Assembly (NCBI RefSeq): GCF_000143415.4
Contig: NW_003314479.1
Location: forward strand, 1-41,569
DNA from: Selaginella moellendorffii
Taxonomy: Eukaryota; Plantae; Lycopodiophyta
Reading direction: 5' to 3'
DNA length: 41,569 nucleotides
The position numbers were made by a program, and so were the translations under genes. The notes below the pieces were generated by a model. That model saw only the letters and a list, made by a program, of their open reading frames with translations. It was not told where the DNA came from and ran no database searches. Positions within the stretch are counted from its first letter, which is position 1. Each line of letters opens with the position of its first letter. Of this stretch, positions 5,181 through 35,742 are shown one piece after another.

Positions 5181-5215
5181 AAGCCAACTATTGAACTTGT
5201 AAAGCTTGAAATCGT

Positions 5216-6335: not shown

Positions 6336-9300
6336 AGAAATGGAGGCAAGACCTGACAGCTACGTTGTGGATAGATTTGTAAAAGAGAAAGCAAGCCATA
6401 CACTTTCAGCCAGCATAGCAGAACACGTAAACCAACCTTATCAAAGATGGGGCACCATGCACGCAGCACTGTACACAGCACCATTTTCTTACCAGAAGAA
6501 AATATAATTCTGAAGTACACTGAAAGAGAATTCTGCACATAATCCCACACACAGGGAAAGCAGGAGAGAGGGAGAACCTTGCAGTAACCCATAGATTTGC
6601 CTGCTCTTTGCATAGCACCCTGTGGTTCTCCTCGCTCTCGTTCACCCTAAAAGCCACAATTAAAAAATTTCTGATTTGAAAAGTTACGACCTTTTGTAAT
6701 TATATCTCAGCTGTTAGATCTTGGCATATGCCCAGAATAAGCGTCCCCAGCATATGCTACTCTTTTGTTTAAATATACTAGCAGGGATCCCAGCTCCGCT
6801 GGGAGTAGTAGAGAATATTTTCAATTTGAAAAGATGTATTTGTAACTATAATTGTTTAAACTATTTCTTTTTCTTAATTTGTTTTAGCATGTTTATTTTT
6901 ATAGGTTGCTACCAAGGCTTACAGCTTTGATTCCAATCTGTGTATTATACAGCTTTACCAGGTTTGCAATTCCTTCATGCCTTTTTTAGTCATTTCTTTA
7001 CTGCACTAACTGGTTTTTCTCATGACAAGTTTGAGCCACAAAATCACAGATATCATGCAGTGATGGTGGTAGTGACAGTTTAGTGACCCTTCTATGAAAG
7101 TTCTTAAGCACAATTCTTAGGAATGGAGCTCTACCTCAGCTTCACAGAAATTGCTTAATGAAAAAGCAGCACTATAAAAAAAAAATTATAAACTAAACAA
7201 TGAAGAATCTGAGTAAGCATGTCAAGGAAAAGAAAAAGTACACATACCTTGAGTGGTCATTAGGGAGAGAGCAATAGGAGTGGCATGAAACTGGATTGAT
7301 GCTGTGTAGCATTTAAAAAGCTGCAAAACAGAGGTGAGGCACCAAACACCAAGAAAATGAAAAAAAAAATGAAAAAATGATCATAAGAATCATAGAACAC
7401 AAGCAAGGTAAGCCAGAAACTTGCTTAGAAATCTCAGCCGGCCTAAACAACAAAGTTTCTTACCTTGTTACTACTACCAGTTGCTACTGAGACTTACAGC
7501 TTTGATTCTAAGCTGTGCCTTCTGCAGCTTTTGTTTTTTTCTCATGACCACAAACATCATGCAGCGATGGAAGCAGCGACAGGTTGGTGACCCTTGTGCG
7601 GAAATCCACATTTGCAGTTAAGTTCTTAAGTGTTGTGTCATAACTCTCAGGAATGGAGCTCTACCTTGGCTGCATTTAAAACTAAAGAATGATTGAAATC
7701 AGCAAACATAAGGAAGGTAAGCAAATTGTAAGTTGTAAATGATGTACCTGCAGACAAATCTTGCAGATGGTGTCCTCTTTTTAGTTGCACCAGTGCTGCA
7801 CACACTTTTGATGAGCATACTACCAAACACAAAAGAGAGAAAAATAAATGAGGAAGAGCCAGAATTGCTTAGAACTCTCAGACAACTCAAGGAACCAAGT
7901 CCCTACCTTCAACCTGCTGCAACAAGAGCATGGGATTTCAGGATTCCCAGCCTCATCTTTCTCCTGCCCACCACCATCACAAGGATCACTCCATAAAGCC
8001 TCCATCAATAAAATCCCAGCAGGGCAAAAATAGAATCTACTGAACATGAAAAAACAGGTTTTGAGCTTGTTCCATTCTTATAGAAATGGGACTCGCCCAA
8101 CCAGTGCTGAGTCTCTCAATGTCCGTGTGTGGAGAGCAAAGAACACAACCTAAGCACATCTTTGATTTCATGGCAGCCAGGAGCCTTGTGCCATGGAACT
8201 TACAGCTGGGTAGGAGAAGGAGAACTCTGACTTGAGAAAGTTTGCCATGGTCAGCAAGGGATGAGGAATTCTCACAGTCGACTTGGATGCATAACTCCAT
8301 GCAATATCAACAACATCGAGCGAGCATGACAAGGAAATTTTGTAAGTTGATCGAATAAATTCTGTATTGATAAAAAAATCAAAAAATTTAGTGCGGATGA
8401 CATTACCTGCTGACAAATCTCACAAATGGTGTTCCCTTATCCTTATTCTTAGTGGCTACATTGGGAACCAGGAACTATTCCAAGCTGCAGTGCTCCTGGT
8501 CTCATGGAATAAAAAACGTTCTGGTTTCTATTGAGCCCATCCTGTGTGAATCAAGCAGCTAGAGCTCCAGAAGATTCTTCAAGTTGTACAATTTGAATGA
8601 ACTTGAACTTGTACTGAAGTTTTATACATAGAGCAAGATGCACACTTCACAGGTATAATGCCTTGCTTGCTGTGTCCTTAGTGTGCTACATCGCGACTTT
8701 TTTTGTCTTGGGATATCTGTGAANNNNNNNNNNNNNNNNNNNNNNNNNNNNNNNNNNNNNNNNNNNNNNNNNNNNNNNNNNNNNNNNNNNNNNNNNNNNN
8801 NNNNNNNNNNNNNNNNNNNNNNNTCTTATGATACTTATTATACACTCATAAATGAATATAATCGCATTGAGTTTTTCGTTACCTCAGATATAGTCTAAGA
8901 TTTGTGTAATATGATAAAGTGATAATACTGTTTTTAAGACTAATAATTTATAAATTGATAAATAACTATAATCACATACAGGTAAAAATATGATTGAGCG
9001 TCATTAGACACAATACAAAAGGCTACAATCTAAGAAAATGTCATTTCAGGAAAAAAAATAATTACACATCATCAATACCCTAATATCAGAGTAAAACCTT
9101 ACCTTTCACCGAAAAATATTAGCCTCAATAACATTGTTATAATGCCATAAATTTAAATAAAAATCAATGAAACATAAAGATAATAATCTTAATTTATATA
9201 AGCATTTTCTCTATATAAAAAGATATACAGAAACAATGTTAATGATATGTAATAGACTACTTCAACTTTTAATAAGTACTAATCTCCATAACAATATTTA

Positions 9301-9545
9301 TAATTTTTAAAATCATAAAATATAAGTAGTTTAAGTGATTTTAAAATCTATATTTCTTATCATTATTATATTTTAATATACTTAAAGTACCACTTTAATA
9401 TAAAATATAAAATATAAAAAATATATTTAAAAAGCTAATATTTTTTAAAAATTTAGATGTAGCAGATAAATAATAATATTTTTATATTTTGTCTATGGTA
9501 CTATATTTAATATAGTATAATAACATTATCAAACCCAGGAGCGAT

Positions 9546-10385
9546 GAAAATTAGTGACTAAAGTCTCAGCTATGCTAGGAGCATCGTGTTTATTCCTGAT
9601 GTTTTAGTAATTTCTAAGAGTTCTAATCATAATTGTAATTTTTAACATATTCATAATGATAACATACATAGTTAAACATATATAATCTTTATATTAAAAA
9701 TCCCTTCTACAATTGACTCTATCACTAATACAAAACACGATGTTCAAATCATGCTCAAGGCTCAGCAGGGCATGAAATACATTTGCCTGGACAGCTTACA
9801 GGTGCTCAACTCCGAAACTCTAGAACCGGTTGCCAAGGACAGTGTCACCTTTGGCGAAGTTTGCATGCATGGGAACATGGTGTTCAAGGGGTACTTGAAC
9901 AATTGTAGAAGAGTTTTCAAGCATGTGATACATATTGCTTGACATATGCAACACTTCATATTCAAGTATCATGCTAACATCGCCTACACTTCATATGCCG
10001 TATGGAATTTTATATTAAAATTGATATGGTTAGTAATGCATCATACATAATGAATCATAATTATTTTATCTGTATCTTGTATAATTAGTGTGAATCACTA
10101 ACACCATACAATAGAAAATACAATAGAAGACTTCACTCAACAATCAGAATTTTAAATGTGATATAATGTTATGAGTTATATTTATTATGTTATGATGTGT
10201 GTTGGTGATAGAGTGAATTGTAGAAGGGATTTTTAATATAAAGATTATATTATGTTTAACTATGTATGTTATCATTATGATTATGTTAAAAATTACAATT
10301 GCTATTACAACTCTTTGAAGTTACTAAAATATTAGGAATAAACACGATGCTCCCAGCATAGTTGGGACTTTAATCACTAATTTTC
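9546..10385. repeat. About 185-bp imperfect inverted repeat (9546-9732 / 10197-10385) of Helitron 3'-subterminal sequence
   Basis: The arms are reverse complements (gaaaattagtgactaaagtctcagctatgctaggagcatcgtgtttattcc.. vs ..ggaataaacacgatgctcccagcatagttgggactttaatcactaattttc) and are homologous to 19008-19160. Confidence 0.9.
9753..9903 (+). pseudogene. 151-bp second copy of the AAE exon segment
   Basis: Colinear with 4533-4683; 9 mismatches by my count, mostly transitions. Confidence 0.9.
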
Positions 10386-10399
10386 TTGGTATTGATTGG

Positions 10400-11299
10400 T
10401 ATGTACTTATACAATTAGAATTCTAGATTAGTGGATTCACAGTGATGTGAATGTATATAATCCAGGATATATACATTATCCTCGATCTAACATCTAAGTA
10501 TCCGAATTATATAATTGGTTATATAATTTTATATGATCAATATAATCAATATAATTCATTTATGCAATTAATATGTAATGCAATATATAAAACTTTTCAA
10601 GCATGAGATTTCATAGGTGGTTATGTTAAAAGTCTTGAATGTCAAAGTGTGGGAAAGCTTACTCGATTGTAAAAAGTTCAGCCTTTTCTATATCATGATT
10701 TTAAATACATATTCTGTAATTACATTAACCTTGAAGAATATGCCACTCTCAACTATTTTTTTCCCATGTGTCTTCATCTCCACTATTAAGCTTAAAAAGA
10801 ATCTCAATTGAATATGTTGCCCTTGCTCTTTTAAATATAGAAGGATAGATATGTACTTATACAATTAGAATTCTAGATTAGTGGATTCACAGTGATGTGG
10901 ATGTATATAATCCAGGATATATACATTATCCTGGATCTAACATCTAAGTAGCCAAATTATATAATTGGTTATATAATTTTATATGATCAATATAATCAAT
11001 ATAATTCATTTATGCAATCAATATATAATGCAATATATAGAAATATTCAAGCATGAGATTTCATAGGTGGTTATGTTAAAAGTTTTGAATGTGAAAGTGT
11101 GGGAAAGCTTACTTGATTGTAAAAAGTTCAGCCTTTTCTATATCATGATTTTAAATACATATTCTGTAATTACATTAACCTCGAAGGATATGCCACTCTC
11201 AACTATTTTTTTCCCACGTGTCTTCATCTCCACCATTAAGCTTGAAAAGAATCTAGATTGAATATGTTGCCCTTGCTCTTTTAAATATAGAAGGATAGA
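10400..11299 (-). repeat. Tandem duplication 2 x 450 bp, each unit starting at a Helitron 5' end
   Basis: 10400-10849 is near-identical to 10850-11299; both begin on the minus strand with A|TCTATCCTTCTATATTTAAAAGAGCAAGGG. Confidence 0.92.
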
Positions 11300-11789
11300 T
11301 TTCAGCAAGTAGAATAACTTTGGTAGGTGTTAGTTCTGTTTAGATCATCATGCAACGATGCTGTTTCTTATCAATAAGTATTTTTGGTTTTTTTTCTGTT
11401 TTGTTTTCAAGCAAACATAGCAATAGCACAACAGAATAGAGATTCTTGTAAGTGCAGGTCACTCTTTTGAACTGTTTTCTGCCTGCACGTTTCCTTTTGA
11501 ATGTTTTAAGCGTTTTTAGGATTGTGATCTGGAATGACATATAGACTTTTTTGTTTTTTACCTAATGCCTTTACGAGAGAGAGCAAAACACTAAATAAAA
11601 TCAAACACGGAAATCATTTCTATGCCCTGAGTTAATGTACAAATATCATGTACTGAATCAAACCAAGCTCATGGCTTCAAAGTTGTGTCTATAAACACGT
11701 ACATACACAACAGTTTATTTAATGCTGTCTTATTCCTTCAGAAATGGCTTTTTTAAAAACAGTTCATGGCTTTGTCTGTAAGAAAGTAG

Positions 11790-11960
11790 AGTAGGCTGCC
11801 ATGTAGAGATCCAATCCTTGTTCTCCACCACCTCAGCTGCCATGTACTTCGCTGTTGTGATATCTCCAAAAGGTGCTGATCACCACTTTGTCGCGCATGT
11901 TTAGCTTGGAAAGAATGTTGTTGAGCTTGAGATCCTGGTGAACCATGCCTCTCAAATAAA
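11790..11960 (-). pseudogene. Protein kinase catalytic-loop remnant
   Basis: GMVHQDLKLNNIL..(frameshift)FGDITTAKYMAAEV, resembling HRDLK/DFG/APE. Confidence 0.6.
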
Positions 11961-12070
11961 TCTATTTGAAGGTTTTTACCAGCTGCTTGATGATTCTGGC
12001 TGCTTTGTCCTCACCAATCTTCTCACAAATATGCTATATTTTAAAGACCAAATAATTATGGAATAATGCC

Positions 12071-12594
12071 TTAAGAAATGAAGGCAATATTTCCACCAAC
12101 GAATGTAACCACTCGAGGAAAAATGTCCGTGCCCTGTCCAAAAGGAGACTCGGACAACACCACAAAGTCGGCAAACTTTCCTTGCGTCAGCGACCCAACC
12201 AAATCCTCCAATGCAGCTGCATACACAGCCGAGGATGTGTACCTGTGAATCCAAAATCAAGAACTGCATTTCAGTTTTCTCATCTGTTTTCTCTTACCCT
12301 GCCACTGCGTCCCATGCAGAAATCCTTTCCTTGGGAATCCAGGGATGACTCCAGCCCGAAGGTGTTCTCTCCATGGCAGTGCGGATCCCTCCAACTGGAT
12401 TCACTGCTACCACCTTGAGAGAAACCATTCACGTAACGCCAAAGAAAAAGTAATTGACAGGCTTTTACAGGCCAGTCGGATCCTAGAGCAACCACGCTAC
12501 CATTTTCGAGGGACCAGAGGTTATAAGATCCGCGTGAGCGCTTCTCACCAAGTTTCTTCACGGCGTAGTAAGCATCATCTAGAAGTTGCTCTGG
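12071..12594 (-). pseudogene. LAF3: LAF3/YtcJ-like amidohydrolase, last three exons
   Basis: PEQLLDDAYYAVKKLGEKRS..ALGSDWP | VVAVNPVGGIRTAMERTP..WIPKERIS | YTSSAVYAA..GSLTQGKFADFVVLS..FVGG..*; canonical introns; 5' part absent. Confidence 0.85.
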
Positions 12595-12629
12595 CTGTAC
12601 AAAAATATAGGGTTTTGCAATGGAGGCAA

Positions 12630-14407
12630 AATGCAGTCATCTGCGTCGATGCGCACAATGCATGGTTTCTTCGGACTCCTCTTTGCTCAGTTTGGCCTTT
12701 ACTACGGCCTTTTGGACGTCCTGTGGTTTCCTCCTGTGATGTTTTCCTTCCTGGCGTTAGAGAGTAACTGAGGATCAAACGAAACAAACCTCGCCATGTA
12801 AGATTGCACTGCCTGAGCAAAGCCAGGCTTGTACGAGAAGAGCAGCCCACGGAAGAGCGATGGAGGCTTCTAGTTGAATACGTCGCTTACTCTAGCCTCG
12901 AACATCTTCTCGCCTAGCGGCTGAACGTGAGCTTGAAACTCTGTAGCATGAGTTTGACAGGGAAAAATTGGAGAGGTCCAAGGTTTTCCGCAGGTACCTC
13001 GGTGAGATGAAACCAAGCTCTTGTCCACATCCCGTTGCTTGTCTAGCACGAATGGCGTGGCACGATATTCTTGCCGCCTTCTCTTACGTTCCTTACGCAT
13101 GGATAGCTTTGGTTCTGATGGATCTTTCTCCCTCAGCATCTCTTCACAGAAAAACGGCAACCATATTGTCAAGAATGGCAGCAATGTCAATAAAAGAAGA
13201 AGCCAACCTGTGTCGAGGAAATACATGTCATCCAGAGCTTCAAGCTCTTCGTTACATACCCCATAGAAGAATAATATGCCTTGCTCTGCGTTCACGGAAT
13301 CTCCTGCAAGGGAGAAACGTGGACCAGAGGGTTTCCAAGTCGCCCAAACACCAGTCGCTACAAAATACGTAAAAGCCCCATGCGAGACCAACAGGAAACA
13401 AATCTACCTACAAGCGCACGTACTTAAGTCGAGAGTATGGACGTCATTGAATAGCTTGTGATCATCGGAGAATCCTCCAAACACGACAAGATACTTTCCA
13501 TGGCTGATTGTTGTGTGCCCGGCTCTTGGCATCAGCTCGGCACCAGTCGTCTTTACCTCCCGCCATGCCATTGTTTCTGGAAACGCACAATGTATGTACC
13601 TGTGTCCAGAATATGAATGTCGTTTAGATAGGCATTACCACCATCCTCGCCACCCATGACAACGAAACAGTTCTTATAGGAAGAGCAGGTATGGCTATCC
13701 CGAGGAATAGGCGAGACTCCAGTGGTAGAAATCTTCTTCCAGACAAAAGTATCTACAGGGGAAAAAAAAATATTTAGAAGAAAACAAGGAAAGATAACAG
13801 GATATTACTCGTGTTCAAAACATGGAGGTCGTTGTAGTACTCCTCCTCTGAGGGATCGCTGGATTTCCCACATCCCCCAAACACGAACAGGTTGTCACCG
13901 ATGAGAGACGCGCTATGTCCTTCTCTCGGAGCAGGAACATCACCAAAGTGTTGGTAGCTGCATCGGATGATAAGAACAAGAAAAAAAAATCGATAGAACT
14001 CAGAGCTTACCAGTATCCAAAACAAAGAGATCGTCTAGCGGGCTGGTTCCATTGGTACCACCAAACACATAGAGCTTAGACCCGACGGCCGTGGAGCTGT
14101 GGCTGTCCCAAGGAGAAGGGTGCGTTCCTTTCATCACAGGCTTGCTCCAGGTGTACATCCCTGCGCAATCCCACCAAAAACATGATCAAAACCATATTTT
14201 CTGGAAAACCCAGAAGAGGAAACTTATACCAAAGTCGAAGACATGAACATCGTTGGTCTGGCACTCGTCCTGGCCGCAGCCACCGAAAATGTAGATGAGA
14301 TTCCTGACCGCATTGCAGGTGTGGCCCCATTTGCACCCCGGCGGCTGCTGCTGGAGCTGATCGCTGGATCGACGAGGCGCCCACTTCATCTTTATCCTAA
14401 AATGCAA
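12630..14407 (-). pseudogene. Near full-length plant kelch-repeat gene (Rab9-effector/Tea1-like), disrupted
   Basis: KWGHTCNAVRNLIYIFGG, PSPWDSHSSTAVGSKLYVFGG, PAPREGHSASLIGDNLFVFGG, PIPRDSHTCSSY..GGED, PRAGHTTISHGKYLVVFGG, and C-terminal EKMFEARVSDVFN..LFRGLLFSYKPGF. Short introns; small deletions cause a frameshift near 13945 and a stop at 12870. Confidence 0.88.
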
Positions 14408-14584
14408 GTGTAAAAGAGAGACTACGGGGTTTATAGCGCTGCAAAATAGGAATCGCTCTCAATGTGGTTCCAGCCTCGAGCACCTAGAACAAACCGGAAC
14501 TTTAAGCCTCGAAAGAGAATAGGGAAGAAGCAAGAGAGTGAAATAGTATATGAATTTACTATGAATGAATGAAGCCAGTGCCAC

Positions 14585-14586
<2 letters not shown>

Positions 14587-14666
<80 letters not shown>
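14587..14666. repeat. (GA)40 microsatellite
   Basis: Perfect dinucleotide run about 230 bp inside a Helitron 5' module. Confidence 0.98.
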
Positions 14667-14670
<4 letters not shown>

Positions 14671-14814
14671 AGCTTACAATCTGCCTGAACGTCCTAAAAA
14701 TTCACTTGATTTGGAGGGTCATTCAATCCAAAGTTGAAGCGTTGCCACCCCTTTGGCACTTGATCTATGCCATCTATTTGAAGTTTTTGAATTTGAACCA
14801 TTAGATTATAAGTA

Positions 14815-14978
14815 TATTCAGAAATAATATTCTAAAAATGGAATAAAAGACGCCGGATGCCATATGCCAATAGCACGTTTAAATAAGGGAGTAAGATATT
14901 CAGAAATAATATTCTAAAAATGGAATAAAAGACGCCGGATGCCATATGCCAATAGCACGTTTAAATAAGGGAGTAAGA
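14815..14978 (-). repeat. Tandem duplication 2 x 82 bp of a Helitron 5' terminus
   Basis: 14815-14896 matches 14897-14978; each starts on the minus strand with TCTTACTCCCTTATTTAAACG. Confidence 0.95.
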
Positions 14979-16269
14979 TACCAGCTCTTTCGTTTAAATA
15001 TACTAGCAAGGAATCCAGCTCCGCTAGCTTGGACCAAAATAAGTCTTTGAAAACACTTTACTGGGATAGAAAAGTTATAGCTAATAGTGCAACATAGAAT
15101 AAATTAGTGTATATTGTATGCTTCTAAGATTTATCATGAGCATCTATAAAATCTATAAGAGTAATAATAATCACAAAGCCTTTTATAAGAGAAATCAAGT
15201 TTATAGATAATTAATTTGCTTTTAATTTGTAATTATTTAAAAATAAATGGAAAAAATATTAGCAGGGATTCCAGCAGAAAATAAAATCAAGGATCCTAGC
15301 TCTAATGGGAAGTAGATATAAAATTCTGTAAATGTAAATTAGTTTTCTGATATAAAAATATACTTTAATGATTCTGTAAATTAATATTTGTTCATTTTTG
15401 AGGTTCTAATCATATTTCCTGAACTTGTGTTACTTAGGTGGTTAATAGATTTGACGTTTTTAGATTATCATAGCTTACCCAGACAAGTTTTGATTGAAAC
15501 CAATCAGGCATTGCATGAAGCCTTGGAGGACTTGTACTTTCTATGGAGCAGAATCGGTCTGTGCCATACCACCAAAAGTATCAGAAAGGCTTCTTAGTGT
15601 AGAAAATATTTTTAACAGCTAGAGAAAAGCATGAATGACAACAGCTTAGCCATGTCCTGCCCACATGGCCACATGGCAAGTGCTAAACCTCAAGCACGAA
15701 TCTTGACATATCCATTCATGCTCTTGCCATTTGAAACAGGTCATTTAGCCCAACATTCATGCTCCTAGTAGCTTTCTTACTGCTTAGGTTCATGGTATCT
15801 AATGATACCATGCAGAGGTAGCCATGAGGTGCTGGGTTTTATCATCTCAATGCTTCCAGAGTAGAGTTCCCTTGCAAAGCCCTACTTTCACAACATTGTT
15901 TTCTTTGGGGAAGAAGTATGTGGTCATGGCAGCTCCCAGGATCAAAGAGTATCTCAGGGTTGAGTAATGGTAGGAAGTTCTAAGCAAGTTTTACTGCTCA
16001 TTCAATCTGGAAGCCTGCTACTCATCGGGAGAAGGATTGGAAATCTAGGAGACACTATCTACTCCTAGAGAGGTCTCTGCTGGAACCAGCAATGCTATGG
16101 GTCCAGAAAAATGCTGTTATGTCATCCCTTGAGAGGAGCAGTGAGGACATATCCAAGTTATAGCCACCAAAAACAAGGTGACAAAAGATGAGGCTTTGGA
16201 GATGATGTGGCCAGGCAATGAACAATGAGTCAGCAAGGGCTGCTGTGTGATGAGTCACACCTCTGGAGT

Positions 16270-16655
16270 TACTCCAGTCCAAAGTGGATCTTTGCGCCAT
16301 ATGATAGGCTTTTCTCTTGAATGAATCATCTAGAGAAAGTATTGGTCCTGCTATGTTATCAGTCTGGCCCTCAAAAAAAGGCCTCCAAGACTACCGAGCA
16401 GTTTCTCGCCATGGAATCCAATGAAACTTTCAAAAGTGATGGCTAAGAGAAATCAAGATAGAAAGTGTCATTGACTCAGCTAAGTTCGTGATCAATGTCT
16501 ACAACAGTAACCCTGCTCATGAAGCATGACGGAAGTGATCTCTTCAGCAAGATTGAGAGCTTTGTAAGTGGCAGCCGTGGTCTCCTCGGCCTTTTGAACA
16601 GCGTAGTCTTCCAGCTCCTGCATGCTCTCATCCTCCAAAAAATCAAAATGGACAA
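16270..16655 (-). pseudogene. SNAP33: SNAP25-family SNARE (SNAP33-like) fragment
   Basis: SMQELEDYAVQKAEETT..LNLAEEI..VMLHEQG, VDIDHELS, GEKLLGSLGGLF, GPILSLDDS; internal deletions. Confidence 0.8.
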
Positions 16656-17850: not shown

Positions 17851-18022
17851 TTGGCTGTTGCCCAGGTACTTTGTCTTTAAAATAAGAAGTAGAAAGTCAA
17901 GACATGGAACCATCTTGAAGCATATCTTAAATCATCACTATCATTTTCTCTAGAGTTCCAAATTTCCTGGGATGCAAAGAAAAGGTTAAGGAGCAGCTAT
18001 GAAAATTGCAGGAATAGAAGGA

Positions 18023-21133: not shown

Positions 21134-24100
21134 NNNNNNNNNNNNNNNNNNNNNNNNNNNNNNNNNNNNNNNNNNNNNNNNNNNNNNNNNNNNNNNNNNN
21201 NNNNNNNNNNNNNNNNNNNNNNNNNNNNNNNNNNNNNNNNNNNNNNNNNNNNNNNNNNNNNNNNNNNNNNNNNNNNNNNNNNNNNNNNNNNNNNNNNNNN
21301 NNNNNNNNNNNNNNNNNNNNNNNNNNNNNNNNNNNNNNNNNNNNNNNNNNNNNNNNNNNNNNNNNNNNNNNNNNNNNNNNNNNNNNNNNNNNNNNNNNNN
21401 NNNNNNNNNNNNNNNNNNNNNNNNNNNNNNNNNNNNNNNNNNNNNNNNNNNNNNNNNNNNNNNNNNNNNNNNNNNNNNNNNNNNNNNNNNNNNNNNNNNN
21501 NNNNNNNNNNNNNNNNNNNNNNNNNNNNNNNNNNNNNNNNNNNNNNNNNNNNNNNNNNNNNNNNNNNNNNNNNNNNNNNNNNNNNNNNNNNNNNNNNNNN
21601 NNNNNNNNNNNNNNNNNNNNNNNNNNNNNNNNNNNNNNNNNNNNNNNNNNNNNNNNNNNNNNNNNNNNNNNNNNTGAATAAAAAAGGGCCATAACATGTA
21701 TAAAGTTCTTTTTTTATTTGCTACAACATTCACAGATCCAATGTTTTTATATTGGACATTTAATTCTTATACAAGGAAAATATGTAGTTGAGGGAGATTA
21801 AATTTGATATTAGTTTTTTATTTTATTTTATTTTATTAGTGAGCTGTATTGGATTGAGTCTTTATAAAGTTTACAACATGTTTGAGATAACTATTTATCA
21901 TGACACTTATATGAGCTTGGTTTACAAAGGTTATAGCCAATGAAATATAGAGGATTATAATTAAAGTTTGAACCTGTATAAAATTAACCATACCATTTGT
22001 TAACCATTTGTTAACTTGTATGGTTATGCTAATGTTATGTTAAATATTCTTGAGCAAGCCTGCCTTAGAGGATACTCATTTTCCACAAGAATTGTATTAT
22101 ATGCTAGATTATGCTATTTCCAGAAATCCTGCCAAGAGAGAAAAAGAAAAATTATCAAAGAATCTGATAATTGACTAACAAGAGAAGGTACTGACTACTT
22201 GTAGTGAGTTGTCACAGAAACTTGTGATCTAGCACCCTAGATGCATGGTCAATAGAGATATCTGAACAACCCTACATGCTAAAATTACTGCTATTGCATA
22301 TATTCAATCACACTCATCCAGGCACAATCCCAGCTTTGCTGGGAGTGTCATGTACATTTTTGTTATTTAGTAATTCTGAAAAGTTCATATTCATCTTTAT
22401 ATTTGAAAAGTTCATACTAATCATAACATACATACCAATTCTAATATAAAAACACACATCAGCTATATTTAGCACCTTTATTGGTTTGGACAAAATTGCC
22501 AATTTGGGATATATCATCATTCATCATACAAGTGTAATTAACTTTTATAATGTAGTATCAGAAATTAGATGGAGATATAGAAATATAAGTAGCTTTACAT
22601 ATGACAATTCATTTTCTTGACATGACAAGCCAGTTCCCATGTGTTCTTAACCAAACTCTAGTTAAACAATCAAATGAGAATATCTATTAGATATCAACTG
22701 CTATTGTACAAATTATGTGTAGTACTAAACATCCAAGAGCAGCATTAACAACACTGATGCTAAGTGGTGGCAGAATTAGGAATGTCATATAACTTTGGTA
22801 AATCACCATAAATCATCATGGTAAATCACCATAGGATAAAGGGTGAAAACCACATATGCTACAATAATTTCTCATACACAGGATAAATGCTAAATTGGTC
22901 AACTCATTATATTGAGAACTAACTTTTTATGTGTCATGAATCTATTATAGAGAATTAATTATCATTATATAAGATCACAGTTACCATTAATAATAATTTT
23001 TGTGATTGAGTTACTCTAGAGTAAATATATATTTACAAACACTTCTTGATGCATCATAGTTATTTATAGTTAGATACAGAACTTTTAGCTATAAAAATTT
23101 CCAAATATATATTTTCTGGGAGTGTCATGTACATTTCTGTTATTTAGTAATTTCTAAAATTTTATATTCATCTTTCTATATAAAATGTTCATATTAATCT
23201 TAACATGCATAACAAACTTTTCTGAAACCTTTATTGAAAGGCTAACACTATTAGTCATAGTTTTTTAACAAATAGTCTACTTTTGTAATAATATGCAAAA
23301 AGGAGAAAATTAATGGATGAATCTGAGCTAAAAACCCTACTTTTATTAAAGAATTAAAATAATACTTAATTAATCATAAATTATAAAGTATTTATTAATA
23401 TATTATCATTCTTGTCTGAAACTATATAATAGTGCAATAATGATTTGGAAATATTTAATAATTTTAAATGAAAATAACAAATAATATATCATTATATTCT
23501 TTTTTAATAATATTCTACTTAAATATTTTATTTTAATATTATAAATATTCTTTTATGAATAAATATATTTTAAATGATTTTATAATTCTTCACTTTACTT
23601 TCTTATTAAATTTTCAAGTTTTAATAGAATTGGGCTTTCAAAGAATTCTTTCTTTATATTTAATAAATTTTAGTCAAGCTGATATAGAAATATTATATTA
23701 TCATTTATATTTTGTTACTTTAGTGGTGTTAGTAGTGTTTCAAATAAAATTTTTGGAATTATTTTAAAAAAGCCCAACCGTTTAGAGTCAGAGACAATTA
23801 TACAATTACATGGTTATTTGATCAAAGAAAAGCTAGAATGTTTTATATGGAGTTTCTTATATTCCTGTTTGGTATATAAATATAAATACTATAATTATAA
23901 AAGTTTTTGGTTTTCTTATGTAAACAAAAAGGGTAGTTGATGTACCTAGATTATACTTAGATATTTGGGATATTCTACTATCTAATAGTTGTTATTCATT
24001 AAGATTAGTCTTTTATTTATAATTTTGAAATGTGTTTAGAATTTATAGACTTTCCCAAATACATATTGTATACTCTAGTTTATTCTAACATCTAATAATT

Positions 24101-25357
24101 GATATACAATAATATTAATCTTGCAAACTAAGTGTTTCTCTATGTAACACACTGTTATTTCATGTTATATATCTGTGTTTGCCATAACAGTTTTTTAGTA
24201 ACACAATTATCACAATGAAGGTTGACACTCATATTCTTTACTGTTCATATATACTTTTTTGATATTTCATAGGGCTTGATCTTCAGAGATGCCAAGTAGC
24301 ATTGGATACCATTCCATTGCATGTCCCACAACCAGAGCAAAATCACCATAAGACAATAACAAGCCTGAGCCTACTTTGGTCATATTATAGCAATAGATCA
24401 TGGTGGTTCGATAATAGATCATTGTTCCCAGCAATCTCTTAATGTTTTGCATTACTATAACGTTTATCAGTGGGTTCTGTTAAAGCTAGAAAACAGAGCA
24501 AGGACTTAAATCCATTAGCTGTAAATGAATTGTTACCTTCTTTTATAATATTGCAGCTCTAGGCAATGTGATATCTTAAGAATTGGGAAAAATAAAAAAG
24601 AACTACATCAAGGGCCTAAAGCTTCCATCTACTGCTCTATACTTCCTTGGAGATTCCCTTCCTTGTATAATTTCAAGGTTTTCAAGGCTGCAGAACTTAA
24701 GCCTCTAGTTGGAGACGTGACTCTGACTTGTGAACTCTCTTGGGTAGGTCAGCTTTATAAACCTGTGAAACAAAGAGCTAAACTTCCACTTTGGATTAAC
24801 AATAAAACTGGAAAAACAGGAACTTTAATGAACAGGAAAGCATGAGAGTGAGGCACTCACTACTTAGCACGTCGCTTGGATTAGCTCGTTGAGCTGGGTG
24901 TGAAGATATTTGGAATTCACCAGTGGACATCTTGAGCAGAGGCTGCCAGAGCAATTGTAGTCGGGTCTTTGGCAACTGGAGAGCTCAATCAATCTCTTTG
25001 GCTGAAGTTACTCTAGATTATTTTTCAGTGGCTCCTCGATATTGATATCGATAAGATCGTTTGCTGGAAGGATCTCCTCAAGATCTTTGCGGACCAGTGA
25101 TCGAACAGAGAGGGGTGCTCGGCTGTGATGTGTTACCACCACCACATTCTGCATAAACCCTAGCCTTAACCATTCCATCTCGTGGCTACTCTAGTCTCTG
25201 GGACAAAGGATCTAGCTCGCGGCCACTCTGGTCTCCAGGACAAAGGATCCAGCTCCCAATCCGCGGTGGAGTCCATTCCATCCTCTTCTGTGACAACTGC
25301 CTAGAGTTAACAACTATTGTATTAAAACCATGCACAACGTGTCTAACAGCCTCACTC

Positions 25358-25690
25358 TTGTCGAGACCCATTCTGATGAGTGCATCCAACAGCTAATCTG
25401 ATCCATTGTGGAGGCAACAGCACAAGGAACTCCCGCTGAATAAAGAGCTGCCAGCCATTCTCGTGGGCCAGCACTTGCAAAACAAGTTTCATGACAAACT
25501 GTAAACCTTGGATAGCTCTGTATATTTCTGATAGCCAATTCATCAATCCATACTCCGCCCAAGCTAGCTGGGAAAACAAAGTTACATTTCACTCTAACCT
25601 CTTCAGACTAACCACCCTTTTCAGGTCATGCTTGGAGGTACTACAAACGATCAATTGCCACTTCTCCTTATCCAGATCATCTCCAATAAT
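25358..25690 (-). pseudogene. HAD-superfamily (CbbY-like, At3g10970-like) phosphatase fragment
   Basis: LAWAE..LMNWLSEIY, GPREWLAALYSAGVPCAVASTMDQIS, LDALIRMGLDK; frameshifted. Confidence 0.7.
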
Positions 25691-26910
25691 TTTTTCTGCA
25701 AAAATGGTGAAAACAAAAAATCGATATAAAAAAGAGACCTTCCTCCAATGATGTCCCAGTCTCTGCAGTTCCTGGGACTTTGTCAAGTCGGGAGTGGACT
25801 TGTACACGTCCCGCTTGAAAGCTGATGCCAGTCGGCACTCATGGCAAGATCTAAAACAAAAGGGACCTCAGCAGTAGTGATCTCGTCCAGGAGGGTGCCA
25901 AGAGCTGGTCGAGAGTGATCGGCAGCCTGTTGTCGCAGCCTGGGACTCTTGTGAGCCAGATTGTGCACGATAATTACCAAGTCAAGGCTTTATATGGATC
26001 TGCTCTCAACAAACCATTCTTCAGCTGCTCTTCTTCATATGATAGGTNNNNNNNNNNNNNNNNNNNNNNNNNNNNNNNNNNNNNNNNNNNNNNNNNNNNN
26101 NNNNNNNNNNNNNNNNNNNNNNNNNNNNNNNNNNNNNNNNNNNNNNNNNNNNNNNNNNNNNNNNNNNNNNNNNNNNNAAAAAATTGTTGATATCAGTGTT
26201 CATGCTATGCCACCACAGTGCATAATATGGAGGTCTTTCCAGCACCCTGTCATGCCACTTGATTAGTAACATACGTGATTAATTAAAAAAAATGATTTAC
26301 CTCCAAACAAGAAGTCGTACCCATCTTAGTTTCATAGACACGCTCTTCGTCACAGAGTTAGTGCTACATAGTATAGTAGCTTGACTTAGACCTTCCACAG
26401 AAATATTAAGACTCTTCACACCCTCACTGTCCACAAAACCTTTTCTACATGAGTTTTCAAGATTGTAGCACACCTGCACATTACCTGACGAGAATGAGCA
26501 ACAAGACCTTGAGCAGCTCATCGTCTGAGGAACCAGAGGAGATGACTCAGATGCTGGAGCTGGTTGTCGTTCCAGATTGGTTCTTCACTTCTCTGGAATT
26601 TTTTCTGGGCTACGAGAAGAGTGCCTCCATGGTTTATAGTCAGGTATATTGAGTTGCCTCCCATTAATCGATGAGAAGTTCTACTGCTAACCTCTTCCAG
26701 AGTTTTGGTGTGGCTCCTTGAGAATCACTGGAGGATAATAACCGGAGGATGCAGCACCATCTTCTTATTCTCCTTGCTCTTGGCTGGAGGTGCTAAGAAA
26801 AGAAGCATTCATAATTCCAGATTTACCTACCAATCCGTGGAAGGCAGAGAAAAATATAAATTGAGAAAAACAAAGAGAAAATGCCAATCCGCGAAGAATC
26901 GGGCATCGAA

Positions 26911-27421
26911 TTCTGACCTCCAGTGGAAAATATAAGTAGTCTGCAAGAACAGAATCCAGGAGAGAGTACATCTGCCCGCTGCCTCTCCTGTCGCTGAATG
27001 CATTTTTTCCAGCCCTAAAAAGCCACATGAAATTTTTCTCTGATTTGAAACGACATGACCTTCGACAATTAGATCTTGGCCGTTAGATCTCAGGATATGC
27101 CCAGAATAAGTGTCGCCAGTATATGCTATTATTATACGGGCTCTTTCGTTTAAATATATGAGTATGATTCTGACCTCCAGTGGAAAATATAAGTAGTCTG
27201 CAAGAACAGAATCCAGGAGAGAGTACATCTGCCCGCTGCCTCTCCTGTCGTTGAATGCATTTTTTCCAGCCCTAAAAAGCCACATGAAATTTTTCTCTGA
27301 TTTGAAACGACATGACCTTCGACAATTAGATCTTGGCCGTTAGATCTCAGCATATGCCCAGAATAAGTGTCGCCAGTATATGCTATTATTATACGGGCTC
27401 TTTCGTTTAAATATATGAGTA
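26911..27421 (-). repeat. Tandem duplication 2 x 257 bp of a Helitron 5' terminus
   Basis: 26911-27167 is near-identical to 27168-27421; the second copy lacks its terminal 3 nt, which are found at 33599-33601. Confidence 0.95.
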
Positions 27422-30319
27422 CTAGCAGGGAACCCAGCTCCGCTGGGATGGTTAGATGCTAATTCTAAAAAGAGAACAATTTATTAAAACTTGTTTAAGT
27501 TCAATATGTAACAAGCACTTGGTTTATTTAGTTTTTACTTAGTGATTGCAACCAAACACTATTTCTTAAATGGTTTACTGGAATAGAATAATACAAGCTT
27601 GGACTCAAAGCTTAAAAGAATTATTCAACACTGTCTAAAAAAGTGTTAATAGTCATTTACAACTTTTGATGTTACAAGTTAGTCATAGTAACTTTATAGG
27701 TGCATGATACAAGTGCTAAGAACTTGCATCCACTCTTGCCATATAGAAGAGGGGAAGAATTACTGGCAAAGATCTTGGGATTGTCCTTTTCTAATGCTGA
27801 TAGGCCATAGTTTCTCAAAACAAAAATGGAAAGAGGGGAAAAGGAGGAAATATAGTAGTGTTTCCATTAATTCTCTCCTTGCATCCTCCCCACTGCTAGC
27901 AAGTCTTTTAGCAATTTATCCAATGATAATGAGCTTTGCCATGAGTCTTTGCGGCTAAGTTGATTAAGCATAACTTCAAAACCAAAAAAAAGAGTATAAT
28001 GGTACTTCAGGAATTCATTGTTGCCACCAAATTTGATAGCAAAAAATGGATGTTTGTGTACAGCTCATTCAAAATTTATGTTTGTTTGCCCAACAGGGCT
28101 GCGGTCTAAATGCTAATGAGTAACTGTATTACTGTTATCTTGCTTGGTGGAGTGATGCGATGGAAATATGCTCATTTCCTTCAAAAATTACCAAAATGAG
28201 GTCTTCCTAGGATTGCCTTAATAGCATATATTGTATAGTACAAAGAAATTACAATAATAATTCACGACATCCTATGGTGAAATAAAGGCCTATTCATTCC
28301 TTGGCTTGGGATGGAAAAGAAAAGCATGTAAAAAAGAGTCATGCAGCTTTACTGTCAGTGTGTATGTTAAGTTGGGCTTTGTGAGTCAGAAGATGGTGGT
28401 ACCCAACTTTGTTAACATACTAACCTGGCTTCTTTCAGCAAAGCACAGTAGAACTTTAACTTCCTTTCCTAGCTGTGAGCTGGACGCCACATAAAACAAA
28501 TGGTGGTGGGCAGAGGCCAATGACATCAGCAGCAGTCAGTTGTTTGGCCTTTTCTTTGGTGCCTACACCACCAGCACTGGCTTCACATCCCTCACCTGGA
28601 GTGTGCATTTCCAAGCAGTCAGCTCTGTTCATTGCAAGAGCCAATCTGATGGCTCCAGTAGTACATCGCATACCATGTCACCAATAACAACCTACTTGCT
28701 TAGTGCTGGCCACCTCTGGTAACAATTACTAAGACATTCTCACTACTGAGCTGATGAGTCATGCTGTGAAGTGCATCCTTCCGAGACTGTGGGAACCTGC
28801 CTGCACAGTGACTGAGAATGAAGCTGCCAATTACACCTCTACTTGCAGGTGATCGTGGTAAAGCCTCCGCTATCCAGCTGCCAACTCTAACATTGGGTTC
28901 ATGGACACACACGTTAATAGGGACCCCAACTCCACTGGGAGAAGTAGAGAACATTTCAATTTGAGAAGATGTAGTTGTACAAACTTTGGAATAGAACAAC
29001 ACATCTTTATAAAATAAAACAATAGAACAATGATTTATTGTGATTCTCTCAGTAACGAGATTTAGTGGTCTCTTATGTAATTTTTTTCTTAGTTGAAAAT
29101 AGGGAGGAATTTCACTATTGTGATGAACATTTAACACATGACTCTTTAAAAAATGTCTGCCAAGAAGCAATGCTCAGAGTCCTAAAAAAATTCCCATAAA
29201 TATGGAAATTCAACCACTCATCTTCCAGATCTTATTTGAATTTTGTAAAATGTTGTAACTACTCTTGCTTCATCACGACCAAAACCTAAAACACTTGAAA
29301 AAAAATGTAGAACACTAAATCACCAACATTTATCCTCTCTAGTTCAAAATTCTTTTCCAAGAAAATGACTAAAACAAGGTTTACCATTGAAATGCACACT
29401 TTCCATTTATTTTGTCACCAATTCTTCCACTCTTTATCACTCGATGGCTAGTGATTGTAAGCCATCAAGAAGCACATGCAAGTAATGCCATCAGCTTGGA
29501 ATCCTTCTCGTTACATCCTCCCAAAGTTTTTTCAAGCACATGGAGAGCATCTTGACAAGGTATGAATCTAAATGTCCTATCCAAGTCTGTCTCTATTTGA
29601 AAATTCTTCTTAAAAACACTTTTGACATGACTTGAACATTTTGGATGTGCACAATGTCCTCTTGTCTTAAGAAGACAGGATTTTATGCAATGCAATATGC
29701 TCAAGGTACTTTGCTTTTGTCATCCAAGCTTTCTTTTCTCCCAAGGTTTAAAATTCTACTCTCTGCTAGAAAGTTTTCCTGACCCCTCCAAGATTCTAAT
29801 CAAGAGACTCCTCAAGTTTCTAATCAATCATTTCCAGAGCATCTTCTCACAGCTATACAGAGCCTCTGGCCTCAACTATACAGATATTTCCAGAGCTTTT
29901 TTGGTTCTTTTTTTTTCTTTCTATTCTTGTTTTCATCTCTCATTTTCCAGGCATCTTCATCAATTTGCCTAAAACTCAATGATGATCTTGATCTTGCCGC
30001 AAGAAACACTGGCAGGAATGTCACTGCTGGNNNNNNNNNNNNNNNNNNNNNNNNNNNNNNNNNNNNNNNNNNNNNNNNNNNNNNNNNNNNNNNNNNNNNN
30101 NNNNNNNNNNNNNNNNNNNNNNNNNNNNNNATCTCATTCTTTTCGTCATTTTCAGAGAGAAGCATAGAGACATCCAACAAGAATGCCAAACCTGGAGTGC
30201 CTCTACTTCATTCTGCCATGAACTATCATGCTGCATAAGCTCCTTGCCATTAAAGCAATTCACAAAAGCTAAGGGTTTCTCCATATTCGACCAGTCATAG
30301 CTGTACATGCTATTTCTTA

Positions 30320-32830
30320 GCGTGATGCTAGAGCCACCTCAAGCTCCTGTTTAAGCTCCAGCAACTTTGGTGTGTTGTATCTGCCATTCTCCTGGAAAGA
30401 AGTAAAATAACATTATCAAACAGGGAAGAGATGCACAAAAACATGATACCATAGGCTGATGATCTATTGGTTCTTTCAAAATTATTGAGCTCTCGGGCAC
30501 ATTTGCAGATTCTCCAACCTCTGTAAAATGGCTTCCACCAACACTCGGAGCAGGAGACACCTCTGATTGGCTTTTGCATGTCTTCAGTACATGCATCTGA
30601 CAGCTTCCACCTCAATACAAGTCACAGTCTCAAAAACAACCAAGGCTATTATTGTTTCTTCACCATTCAAACACATGAAGATGAGACTCAATCCCTAGGC
30701 AGGACAGAAAATGACAAATTGAATTGGAGTAAGGCCAGCAAGGATAATCAAAATAGCATACCTCACATGTGATATACGTCTGTGCTGGCTTATATTGCAT
30801 TGACAGCTTCCCATGTCATTGTTTCCAAATCAAAGATGTTGAGGTCATTGAGCAAACACCTATTGGAGTCTTCTCCACCTAACATGACTCCACTAAAGCA
30901 GGATCCGATCAGCGAAATAGACTGGCCCCTCAAACAGTAAATGGTCAATCTCAGGTTCAAAAACATGAACTGGAGATAGAGAGCACTGAAGTGAGACACT
31001 GAAATGCATTATATTAACCTGACAGAGTCAAGGGTTTCTCAAGTGGCCACCAACAAACAGCATCCTGTTCTTCAGAATCTGAAAACACTCGGGAATATTG
31101 TATGAAAGTATAAAGCTAAAAAATTACCAGGCTATGACCGGCACAGGGTGGGATCAGTGGCATGGAGAAGGACAAAAGGAGACATTGGGAGCTTTTGCTC
31201 AACTTTGGACCAGGTGAGCATTCTTAGATTGAGCACCTATGGCAAAGGTGCAACATCAGTTATTAAAGAGCAAAACACTACATACCTGGACATCGTTCCA
31301 CCATTTGCTGATGGCAGCAAGGGGGATGGAGGAGAGTTGTTTACAGCAGGGATGTACTCCTCCTGAAGGCTTGGATTTAAATCATTGTCTGCATAGGATG
31401 AAAGAATGCTGCAAAGTTTTAGTTATAACACAAAAACAAACAAGTATAAAGCAATTTCACCAATTCCCTCAACTTTTTCCCCTTGCAACTTGACTACCAG
31501 TCTGGATCCTGTTTCTGCAAGTGAAAGATAAAGTCCCCGTGTCAAAAACATGAACTTGAGATAGAGAGCACTGAAGTGAGATGGATCTCAAAGCTCCTCT
31601 GCATTACATTAACCTGAGACAGAGTTGGGGGAGTTTTTTGAGTGGTCACCCACAACAAACAGCATCCTGTCTCTAAACATTTTTGCTGTGTGAAGGCCGG
31701 ATCCTCGCCCCTGTATTTCCCATCCGGCCAGATTCCAAAGCCTCAGCGATCCACAAACGTTCCCAGGATCTGGCTGTAAGGTGGAAGAATCAACACATCC
31801 GCAAACTCCACGGCATCCTCCACAATCTCCTCGATCTTCTTTTCGATGGCTTTCAACTCTGCCTCACTGGCTAGTCTTTCTTCCAGCAAGTACTTCTTGA
31901 AAGGAGCGATGGGATTGCAAGTGGCATGCTTGCTCTTTTGCTCTGGGCAGAAAGAAAGAGAGTGAAGAACAAAGCAAGGCACTTACCAGGCTTGCAGAGC
32001 TCGTCCGGATTGGTGAGAGAATGACCTCTATATACCAATAAGTCTCACACTCCACTAATATCGGGCCGTCACCCCTCTGAGCTCTCGCAATGGCTTCCTT
32101 GGCCACCTCGCCGACTTTGAGCACGTCCATTCCATCGACGTGAACTCCATGCATACAAAAGCCTCTCTTTTCTTCCAGATCTCCGGCACTAATGTAGCTC
32201 GAAAGTGGTCCATGCCGATTGCCAGAGGTTGTTCTCCACCACGTGGACAATCGAGTTAGACAGATACCAGAGGTGAAAACCATTCATTGCAAACATCACT
32301 CTCTCCATAATAGTGGAGCACTTGACATAATTTTCTTCCATTTTCATCTCCGTGACAATCCCACCATTTGCTGATGGCAGCAAGAGGGATATAGGAGAGT
32401 TGTTTACAGCAGGGATGTCCTCCTCCTGAAGACTTGAATTTAAATCATTGTCTTGCATAGGCTGAAAGAATGCTCCAAAGTTTTAGTTATAACACAAAAA
32501 TGAAAAAGTATAAAGCCATTTCACCAATTTCCTCAACTTTTTCCCCTTGCGACTTGACTACCAGTCTGGATCTTGTTCCTGCAAGTGAAAGTGAAAGTCC
32601 CCGTGTCAAAAGCATGAACTGGAGATAGAGAGCACTGAAGTGAGATGGATCTCAAAGCTCCTCTGCATTACATTAACCTGAGACAGAGTCGGGGAAGTTT
32701 TTTGAGTGGCCACCCACAACAAACAGTTATTAAAGAGTGAAAAGCTACATAGCTGGACATCGTTCACATAGTGATTCCCTCCAATCATGAACATCTTATC
32801 GTGTACAACCGCTGCTGCATGCTGCACACC
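30320..32830 (-). pseudogene. ACBP4: Dispersed exons of a kelch-type acyl-CoA-binding protein (ACBP4/5-like)
   Basis: QHAAAVVHDKMFMIGGNH..NDVQ (about 32755-32825); VLNLRMLTWSKVEQK..PLIPPCAGHSL (about 31128-31237); GQSISLIGS..GGEDSNRCLLNDLNIFDLETMTWEAV (about 30795-30930). Exons are in native order. Confidence 0.8.
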
Positions 32831-33175
32831 AAGGTTTACAATGTAGTTTCACACACAAAAAAAGACAAACCTGATAGTGAGATGCTGATCTTCATCCAGA
32901 TACCAGAGGTGAAAACCATTCGTTGCAAACATCAGTCTCTCCATAATAGTGGAGCACTTGACATCATTTTCTTCCATGTTCATCTCTTGGCAAGCCCACC
33001 ATTTGCCGATGGCAGCAAGGGGGATGGATTTAAATCATTGTCTTGCATAGGCTGAAAGAAAGCTGCAAAGTTTCAGTTCTAACACAGAAACGAAAAAATA
33101 TAAAGCCTTTTCACCAATTTTCTCAGCTTTTCTCCCTGGCGACTTGACTACCAGTCTGGATCTTGTTCCTGCAAA
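30960..33175. repeat. Multiply duplicated internal module
   Basis: ccaccatttgc(t/c)gatggcagcaag..ttgactaccagtctggatc.. at about 31298, 32362 and 32996; partial copy at 30960-31070; 32261-32350 recurs at 32897-32985. Confidence 0.88.
31680..32255 (-). pseudogene. pdhA: Plastid-type pyruvate dehydrogenase E1 alpha, 3' fragment
   Basis: IVHVVENNLW, GVHVDGMDVLKVGEVAKEAIARAQRGDGPILVECETY, RGHSLTNPDEL, 44-bp intron 31943-31986, EAELKAIEKKIEEIVEDAVEFAD, GFGIWPDGKYRGEDPAFT; frameshifts. Confidence 0.92.
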
Positions 33176-33306
33176 GATAAATAGATGGAAACTCTCAAAA
33201 AACATTGAAAAACTTACTTTCAAGGTTGTAAAGAAGAGTCACATAGCTTCAGTCAATGGCCCACTTCTCCACTGCAAGCACAAGCCGTGAGAAGCAGCAC
33301 ACACAG

Positions 33307-33313
<7 letters not shown>

Positions 33314-33367
<54 letters not shown>
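33314..33367. repeat. (GA)27 microsatellite
   Basis: Perfect run at the same position in the 5' module as 14587-14666. Confidence 0.98.
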
Positions 33368-33372
<5 letters not shown>

Positions 33373-33601
33373 ACTCACAATCTGCCCTGTCGCCCTAAAA
33401 AATTTCACTTGATTTGGAGCGTCACTAAAATCACATTGAAGCGTTGCCACCCCTTTGGCACTTGATCTATGCCATCTATTTGAAGTTTTTGAATTTGAAC
33501 CGTTAGATTATAAGCATATTCAGAAATAATATTCTAAAAATGGAATAAAAGACGCCGGATGCCATATGCCAATAGCACGTTTAAATAAGGGAGTATGATG
33601 A

Positions 33602-33630
33602 CTAGCAGAAACCCCAGCTCCGCTGGGAGA
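33602..33630 (-). mobile_element. Helitron 3' terminus (element C; 5' end not identified)
   Basis: Hairpin 33613-33627 + CTAG abutting the TC of element A. Confidence 0.85.
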
Positions 33631-35666: not shown

Positions 35667-35742
35667 TTTATATTTATATTTATATTAGTGGTTTTATATA
35701 CAAACACTAAGGGTAGCTAAGTTTTTCTAGGTTTTTTAAGTT

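Follow-up and report, generated by a model that had tools for sequence, protein, structure and literature searches.

Target choice by Helitrons is poorly understood beyond the AT dinucleotide in AT-rich DNA. In maize, unlike Helitrons with different gene cargo lie head to tail, with the CTAG of one followed directly by the TC of the next, and insertion at the A|T step formed by a host A and the resident's 5ʹ end has been raised as a possibility (Du et al. 2008, BMC Genomics, PMC2267711). Maize Helitrons also prefer to insert near or inside other Helitrons, according to Yang & Bennetzen 2009 as cited by Dong et al. 2011 (PMC3288121). In bats, the part of Grabundzija et al. 2016 (PMC4778049) dealing with such joins describes 3ʹ ends lying directly against another Helitron's 5ʹ end, whether intact or truncated, with empty sites proving insertion, and citing papers attribute a report of the same arrangement to Pritham & Feschotte 2007. 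In fungi, a FoHeli4 copy, a Helitron2 element, has the partial 5ʹ end of another copy 2 bp downstream of it (Chellapan et al. 2016, PMC5148889). Xiong, Dooner & Du (2016, Plant J), as summarized in PMC12628747, describe truncated Helitrons arrayed in tandem, in which several 5ʹ ends go with a single 3ʹ end. The DNA considered here, termed the window, is a stretch of 41,569 bp from the lycophyte Selaginella moellendorffii (contig NW_003314479.1; 37% G+C, six runs of N). It holds at least five non-autonomous Helitrons with gene fragments, chained together in one orientation. A first-pass annotation made from the sequence alone had proposed that Helitrons were inserted here into the first bases of other Helitrons' 5ʹ ends and supposed the arrangement to be undescribed, a supposition at odds with the published maize, bat, and fungal cases and the arrays with several 5ʹ ends.

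Both termini of a canonical Helitron (Helitron1/HLE1) are recognizable in the window. The intact 5ʹ termini open with TC (TCATACTC, TCTTACTC, and TCTATCC), each preceded by A, and the 3ʹ terminus, found five times, is made up of a 6-bp stem (CCCAGC/GCTGGG), a 3-nt loop, 7 nt, and CTAG. A strict pattern (CCCAGC-N3-GCTGGG-N5-10-CTAG) has four minus-strand matches, with CTAG ending at 6778, 19002, 27422, and 33602, and one plus-strand match at 35641-35666; shuffled window sequence has none. A fifth minus-strand end, at 15003, has a decayed hairpin stem with its CTAG kept. Each of these five minus-strand CTAG ends directly abuts a Helitron 5ʹ leader in the same orientation. The letters after CTAG are TATATTTAAAC at both 6778 and 15003, TTCTTCTATATTTAAAAG at 19002, TACTCATATATTTAAAC at 27422, and TCA followed by TCATACTCCCTTATTTAAAC at 33602. 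The plus-strand end is followed by AT-rich non-leader DNA and is the sole intact 3ʹ end in the window without a leader, and three decayed 3ʹ-like ends that lack CTAG (about 9560, minus; about 10377, plus; about 28920, minus, with CTAT) likewise meet none.

The leaders belong to three types, as judged from intact termini in the window and in ten further S. moellendorffii loci (L001 to L010). The A type begins with TCATACTCATATATTTAAAC (window 27167, L009, L010), the B type with TC(T/A)TACTCCCTTATTTAAAC (window 33598, 14978, and 14896), and the C type with TCTATCCTTCTATATTTAAAAG (window 11299 and 10849) or, as a variant in L003, with TCATCC. Measured against these intact termini, the offset of each junction, defined as the number of leader nucleotides missing before it, is 0 at 33602, 3 at 27422, 4 at 19002 (3 against the TCATCC variant), and 9 at 6778 and 15003. 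All five fall between an A and a T, and in the A-type leader an A|T occurs at only seven of the first 40 steps. The abutting ends, the offsets on A|T steps, and the three 5ʹ-end subtypes had all been read correctly in the first-pass annotation, which did not cover the plus-strand end or the three decayed ends that meet no leader.

How unusual such junctions are was assessed in the window and the ten other loci, which add 198 kb for a total of 240 kb. The loci were picked through paralogues of two pieces of cargo in the window, an AAE7 fragment and an RPA-like sequence, and junctions played no part in the choice. All sampled loci are nonetheless tied to the cargo of the window's own Helitron families, so the census figures describe a biased 240-kb sample and are not a genome-wide rate. 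Paralogues in assembly GCA_000143415.2 match much of the window at 90-96% identity. With a relaxed 3ʹ pattern, 18 of 22 hairpin-and-CTAG ends run straight into a leader (five of six in the window and 13 of 16 elsewhere), and eleven of the 18 junctions have offset 3 (CTAG|TACTC). The count of ends that had been called for genome-wide is thereby supplied for ten loci and the window. By comparison, a leader core lies within 12 nt after 35 of the 41,150 A|T steps in the 240 kb (0.085%), after 12 of 10,752 AT-rich A|T steps (0.11%), and after one of 1,017 CTAG sites without a hairpin. Given 35 in 41,150 as background, five of five would arise by chance with a probability of about 1e-15. Seen from the leaders, among 16 that lie outside the window, 12 are preceded by a 3ʹ end, two by another leader's stub, and two are free.

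Three additional junctions (L007+17491, L008+5896, and L001-3694) involve one different 3ʹ family and two decayed 3ʹ ends. At the first of these, near 17450-17500 on the plus strand of L007, the other family is represented by a 3ʹ end whose long AT-rich hairpin, TTGGGAGATATATATCTCCCAA, is followed by TTTGCTAG. This end, too, joins an A leader at offset 3, so the leader is targeted by more than one 3ʹ-end family. A fourth leader type, D, occurs at L010 10582-10620 (plus strand), where TCA TCA TCAAACTC...TTTATTTAAAGT carries two TCA stubs with no 3ʹ end upstream; in L001, on the minus strand near 3694, the same leader comes after a decayed 3ʹ end, with offset 0. Logan contigs of two organisms hold more CTAG|leader joins at exactly the window's breakpoints, and contigs from the runs also show stub stacks and one insertion at offset 36. 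Every offset seen (0, 3, 4, 9, and 33, plus 36 in the run contig) lies on an A|T step. The terminus-directed precision first proposed therefore holds in its frequency and, as set out below, in its exact empty sites, whereas the zone is wider than the first 9 nt, as offsets 33 and 36 attest.

Two simpler landmarks for the transposase were considered and set aside. Targeting by motif alone is contradicted by about 45 TATTTAAA-like sites outside leaders, none of which has a 3ʹ end before it. A leader hairpin is likewise disfavored: DNA folds of the four leader types gave z values from -0.9 to +2.3 with no conserved or significant structure, and a 9-bp stem is present in the A2 leader variant only.

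The order of arrival is most legible where both flanks of an insertion survive. For this purpose, the elements of the chain are numbered E0 to E5 along the minus strand, from 33627 downward. In L003, a 4,187-bp TC...CTAG element splits an A leader between nt 33 and 34; the leader rebuilt from the 24-nt stub and the sequence after CTAG is gapless and agrees at 78-80 of 84 positions with four of six intact leaders compared. In the window, TCA (33601-33599) joined to the sequence from 27421 onward is identical at 43 of 43 positions to the intact copy at 27167, which places E1 as an insertion between nt 3 and 4 of the E2 leader. Both are canonical A|T insertions without target-site duplication (A33|T34 in L003, A3|T4 in the window), with no base gained or lost. 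The TCA beside 33602 is thus most plausibly the 3-nt stub left by the next-but-one element, and the same combination of a stub upstream and its remainder downstream is seen at L003 with 24 nt and at E1 with 3 nt. A stack of two TCA stubs before a leader, as predicted for repeated insertion, is present at L010+10582. Because two insertions are precise on both flanks and junctions recur at other loci, we take elements to have entered resident 5ʹ leaders more than once.

These filled sites also bear on the reverse order of events, in which the downstream element is the newcomer and lands at the CTAG|T cleavage site of a resident 3ʹ end, its own 5ʹ end either intact (offset 0) or nicked by RepHel at an alternative A|T of the leader. 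CTAG|T is likewise a natural RepHel cleavage site, this order was weighed for the maize pair (Du et al. 2008, PMC2267711), and very young A1 composites, 99% alike, each stand behind a different and far more diverged 3ʹ element. However, insertion at 3ʹ ends requires a non-canonical G|T target, whereas leader targeting makes every junction a canonical A|T. It also leaves the 24-nt stub and exact remainder around the L003 element unexplained, along with the TCA before E1 and the stub stacks. This order is considered improbable as the general explanation.

A different question is how many separate events the junctions record. Comparison of 600 bp on either side of every junction showed that members of the A2 leader family (window E5, L003, L005, L007, and L010) have differing upstream partners, at offsets 9, 33, 3, 3, and 3, respectively. 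Conversely, the partners of U1-family 3ʹ ends (GACTTTTGCTAG) are B (+3), C (+4), A (+3), or A (0) leaders, or host DNA. The A1 composites are alike over 3.9 kb, yet their partners and offsets differ, being +3 in L004 and 0 in L009. Such variety of partners and offsets within single families points to many separate events.

The opposing explanation is that there were few real events, one or a few ancestral junctions having been spread by transposed composites, by segmental duplication, or by unequal recombination between modules of about 60-80 nt, common to all members of the chain, consisting of a 3ʹ end and a leader. Decayed internal 3ʹ ends do reveal read-through composites, and the multi-terminus Helitrons of maize have been explained likewise. 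Under this explanation, however, one leader family would not be expected to have at least four upstream partners at three offsets, nor one 3ʹ family five downstream contexts. Divergence of the two flanks is often unequal (74% upstream versus 97% downstream for L002-11959/L004), and a first cause would still be needed for each distinct junction type. Spread from a handful of junctions is accordingly judged an unlikely account of the whole, about on a par with insertion at resident 3ʹ ends.

We favor the reading that the chain was built mainly by integration into resident Helitron 5ʹ leaders, with composite copying in addition, and assign it a probability of roughly 0.6. Under this reading, ordinary Helitron integration between A and T, without target duplication, would be aimed at the 5ʹ leader of a resident element. 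The target zone would span about 10 nt, from the terminal TC to a conserved TAT(A/T)TTTAAA block, with a hot spot directly after the first A (TCA|T); rarer targets would be the A|TC step formed with the host A (offset 0) and the A|T steps at nt 33 and 36 of A-type leaders. The incoming CTAG would end up against a shortened resident leader, and the severed first letters of the resident would remain as a stub upstream of the incoming TC. Bypass of the terminator could then copy pieces of the chain as composites, so that some junctions would be inherited rather than new. For most of the insertion events, we infer the order.

Several observations weigh against this reading. Not all junctions are independent: the L001 and L006 junctions are homologous on both sides, as are L003-4310 and window 19002, and each pair may be a single event that was copied, judging from the flanking sequence. 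The neighborhood of E3 and E5 is common to the window and L003, with 93-95% identity, and a 50-nt module of hairpin-CTAG plus nt 10-33 of the A leader is common to window 15003 and L003-16322. All of these are as expected if few junctions were spread. The earlier view of the five window junctions as separate events thus stands in part, borne up by the many distinct partners and qualified by the recurrence of E3, E5, and the 15003 module in L003 and by the perhaps shared junction at 19002. Moreover, the sole case inside the window with both flanks depends on a 3-nt stub, and the stubs expected from the offset-4 (TCTA) and offset-9 (TCATACTCA) events were not found anywhere in the 240 kb, a result that insertion at resident 3ʹ ends accommodates. 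The remainder (nt 34 onward) of the 24-nt stub at 14979-15002 was not found in the window, nor was the 5ʹ end of E0 when 33560-37400 was read through. Three of the four elements E1 to E4 (E1, E2, and E4) hold assembly gaps, and the short contigs reach across none of the window's own junctions.

The chain itself can be followed on the minus strand from E0, the uppermost recognizable element, whose 3ʹ end (33602-33627) consists of the hairpin CCCAGCGGAGCTGGG, GTTTCTG, and CTAG. A stack of stubs was expected above E0, and a search with the pattern TCATACTCATCTATC, allowing up to three mismatches, gave chance-level matches only. The CTAG of E0 abuts, at offset 0, the TCA stub (33599-33601), the first 3 nt of the A-type leader of E2, severed by E1. 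E1 (27422-33598) begins with an intact B-type terminus, TCATACTCC, at 33598 and ends in a hairpin and CTAG at 27447-27422. It contains an E1_dh gene fragment (31864-32283) and an internal decayed 3ʹ end (about 28920-28946; hairpin CCCAGTGGAGTTGGG, with CTAT replacing CTAG) that has no leader next to it and resembles the pseudo 3ʹ termini of maize multi-terminus Helitrons. Right after the CTAG of E1, at offset 3, the first copy of a 257-bp tandem unit (27165-27421) carries an A-type leader from nt 4. E2 (19002-27167) begins at 27167 with the intact A-type terminus TCATACTCA, which is the second 257-bp copy, starting at TC, and closes with a U1-type 3ʹ end at 19027-19002.

E3 (15003-19001) is the only gap-free element. 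It opens with a C-type leader minus its first 4 (or 3) nt, ends in the decayed hairpin and CTAG at 15028-15003, and is 93-95% identical to the 4,187-bp element precisely inserted in L003. Between E3 and the next element lies the 24-nt stub (14979-15002), equivalent to nt 10-33 of an A-type leader, with the CTAG of E3 before it (offset 9) and a B-type terminus after it (offset 33). We infer that E3, the stub, and E4 arrived jointly as a read-through composite, which would account for the missing remainder of the stub. E4 (6778-14978) is itself composite: B-type termini at 14978 and 14896 belong to 83-bp tandem leader copies, C-type termini at 11299 and 10849 to a 450-bp tandem, a Kelch fragment lies at 13774-14025, and the 3ʹ hairpin and CTAG lie at 6803-6778. 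Inverted decayed 3ʹ ends at 9546-9732 and 10198-10385 are 91% alike across 188 bp and have lost CTAG. They form one of two inverted, outward-pointing pairs of 3ʹ ends enclosing 0.5-2 kb, the other being 33602-33627 (minus) with 35641-35666 (plus). Both B-type elements carry a (GA)n microsatellite about 230-300 nt in from their terminus, as (AG)n at 33313-33367 in E1 and (GA)n at 14587-14666 in E4, and this equivalent position suggests a family feature rather than local expansion.

The last member, E5 (1-6777), extends past the window start. Its A2-type leader is present from nt 10 (offset 9) in a variant without nt 29-39, like that in L007, and its paralogue in L003 terminates in a U1-type 3ʹ end. 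E5 carries the AMP-binding_C (AAE7) fragment at 4917-5306, whose best relatives are S. moellendorffii gene models 79-92% identical to it, and an RPA70-like open reading frame (ORF) at 1414-1980 (minus). Captured pieces of host genes, as first claimed, are therefore present in the chain as E1_dh, Kelch, AMP-binding_C, and RPA-like sequences. Among 30 selected ORFs scanned with Pfam, none had a Rep or helicase domain, and no such ORF was noticed in the window, an autonomous partner not having been sought; an Rfam search of the whole window gave no match.

Three leader segments in the chain are tandemly duplicated on the minus strand: 257 bp at 99% identity (26910-27421), 83 bp at 98% (14809-14980), and 450 bp at 95% (10400-11300). 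In each, the first copy ends in A and the second opens exactly at the terminal TC. Self-insertion was tried as their origin and rejected, given that the next CTAG is not followed by the remainder expected of a resident and that identity between copies is 95-99%; the absence of that remainder leads us to read the duplications as local products. Local duplication is thus more likely than self-insertion. The copies look more like products of the transposition machinery than of slippage, and re-ligated abortive rolling-circle starts are a possible origin. The duplications match the published Helitron arrays in which one 3ʹ end accompanies several 5ʹ ends.

Duplications of this kind resemble products expected if the entire chain were a rolling-circle concatemer, in which replication runs on around a circular intermediate and the resulting multimer later diverges. 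Tandem arrays are on record in bats and plants, and CTAG|TC is the junction of a Helitron circle. However, self-comparison of the window yields no unit-length repeats, only the 83-, 257-, and 450-bp leader segments being tandem, which contradicts a whole-chain concatemer. Neighboring members of the chain are alike only in their terminal tens of bases and differ in leader (A, B, or C), 3ʹ type, and cargo, and neither stubs nor non-zero offsets would be expected of a multimer. A concatemeric origin is very unlikely.

Less credible still is an assembly artefact, in which the gapped draft scaffold would have wrongly connected repeated Helitron ends. The window does contain six gaps, four of them inside the chain: 30031-30130 in E1, 26048-26177 and 21134-21674 in E2, and 8724-8823 in E4. 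No junction is closer than 1.2 kb to any of these four, which therefore leave the junction letters untouched. Paralogues bridging the four were not found, and the number and size of elements between junctions are therefore certain only for 15003-19001. The two outer gaps, in E5 (1567-1727 and 2496-2595), are collinear with at least five paralogues; the first interrupts the RPA70-like ORF, and the second is oversized, with 100 N in place of 13-24 bp in the paralogues. Public runs were also compared with window 14400-19400. The best of runs X1-X4 carry 24-40% of the sampled words, with many fixed differences, indicating that the sequenced plants differ from the assembled haplotype or accession; the short Logan contigs show junctions of other copies, and none bridges or dates the window's own. 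The six gaps and a word share of only about 40% speak for mis-joining; against it, junctions of these types are found on large scaffolds at ten further loci and recur in independent short-read contigs of two organisms.

Four in five 3ʹ ends of this family group lie within the first letters of a leader and so preserve, to the single base, which targets were chosen in nature. The hypothesis offered is that recognition of the left end by the transposase doubles as target recognition. IS608, of the IS200/IS605 family, and IS91 are moved by HUH single-strand transposases, their target resembles or adjoins their own end cleavage site, and no target duplication is made. By analogy with IS608-type transposases, it is plausible that RepHel recognition of its own left end picks the target. 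Recruitment of the incoming strand by RepHel bound to a resident 5ʹ end, as suggested in the first-pass annotation, is likewise hypothetical. The stronger proposition, that in this lycophyte the transposase prefers resident left ends, cutting at A|T within about 10 nt upstream of TAT(A/T)TTTAAA and most often after TCA, and that self-targeting is the main mode of integration, is tentative and, in our estimate, falls a little short of even odds. If true, it would be a eukaryotic counterpart of the transposon-directed target choice of IS608, and it would yield self-assembling arrays with countable stub stacks, in which captured gene pieces are shuffled into ever longer mobile composites. Chains of this kind also offer captured exons from many genes an easy way to become linked in large mobile composites, which are then wrongly annotated as genes. 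As most 5ʹ ends here lack TC, a practical warning for Helitron annotation follows.

Placed beside the systems described to date, the window both repeats and extends them. As in the maize pair, its five junctions join CTAG to a different element with unrelated cargo. However, the maize pair is a single case, whereas here such joins are the rule, fall mostly inside the leader with offset 3 dominant, leave stubs, and form chains of at least five members. The bat joins, in the part of that work that treats them, are noted as a source of novel 3ʹ ends rather than as a dominant target choice, and the same part describes no A|T offsets or stub stacks. Fungal Helitron2 belongs to another clade with other termini, and its cases are anecdotal and involve copies of the same family. 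The plant arrays, as summarized in the citing paper, are long and centromeric, whereas the leader duplications of the window are two-copy and lie within a chain of unlike elements. IS608 and IS91 are compared for a possible mechanism and not for membership; they are bacterial and use short fixed target words, and no sign of a guide-sequence mechanism is seen here. The leaders likewise yielded no conserved hairpin. Published work thus already includes joins of unlike Helitrons, arrays with multiple 5ʹ ends, and insertion next to or within 5ʹ ends; the additions made by this locus and its relatives are the frequency of such joins, an offset map with a hot spot, two exact filled sites, and the evidence of recurrence.

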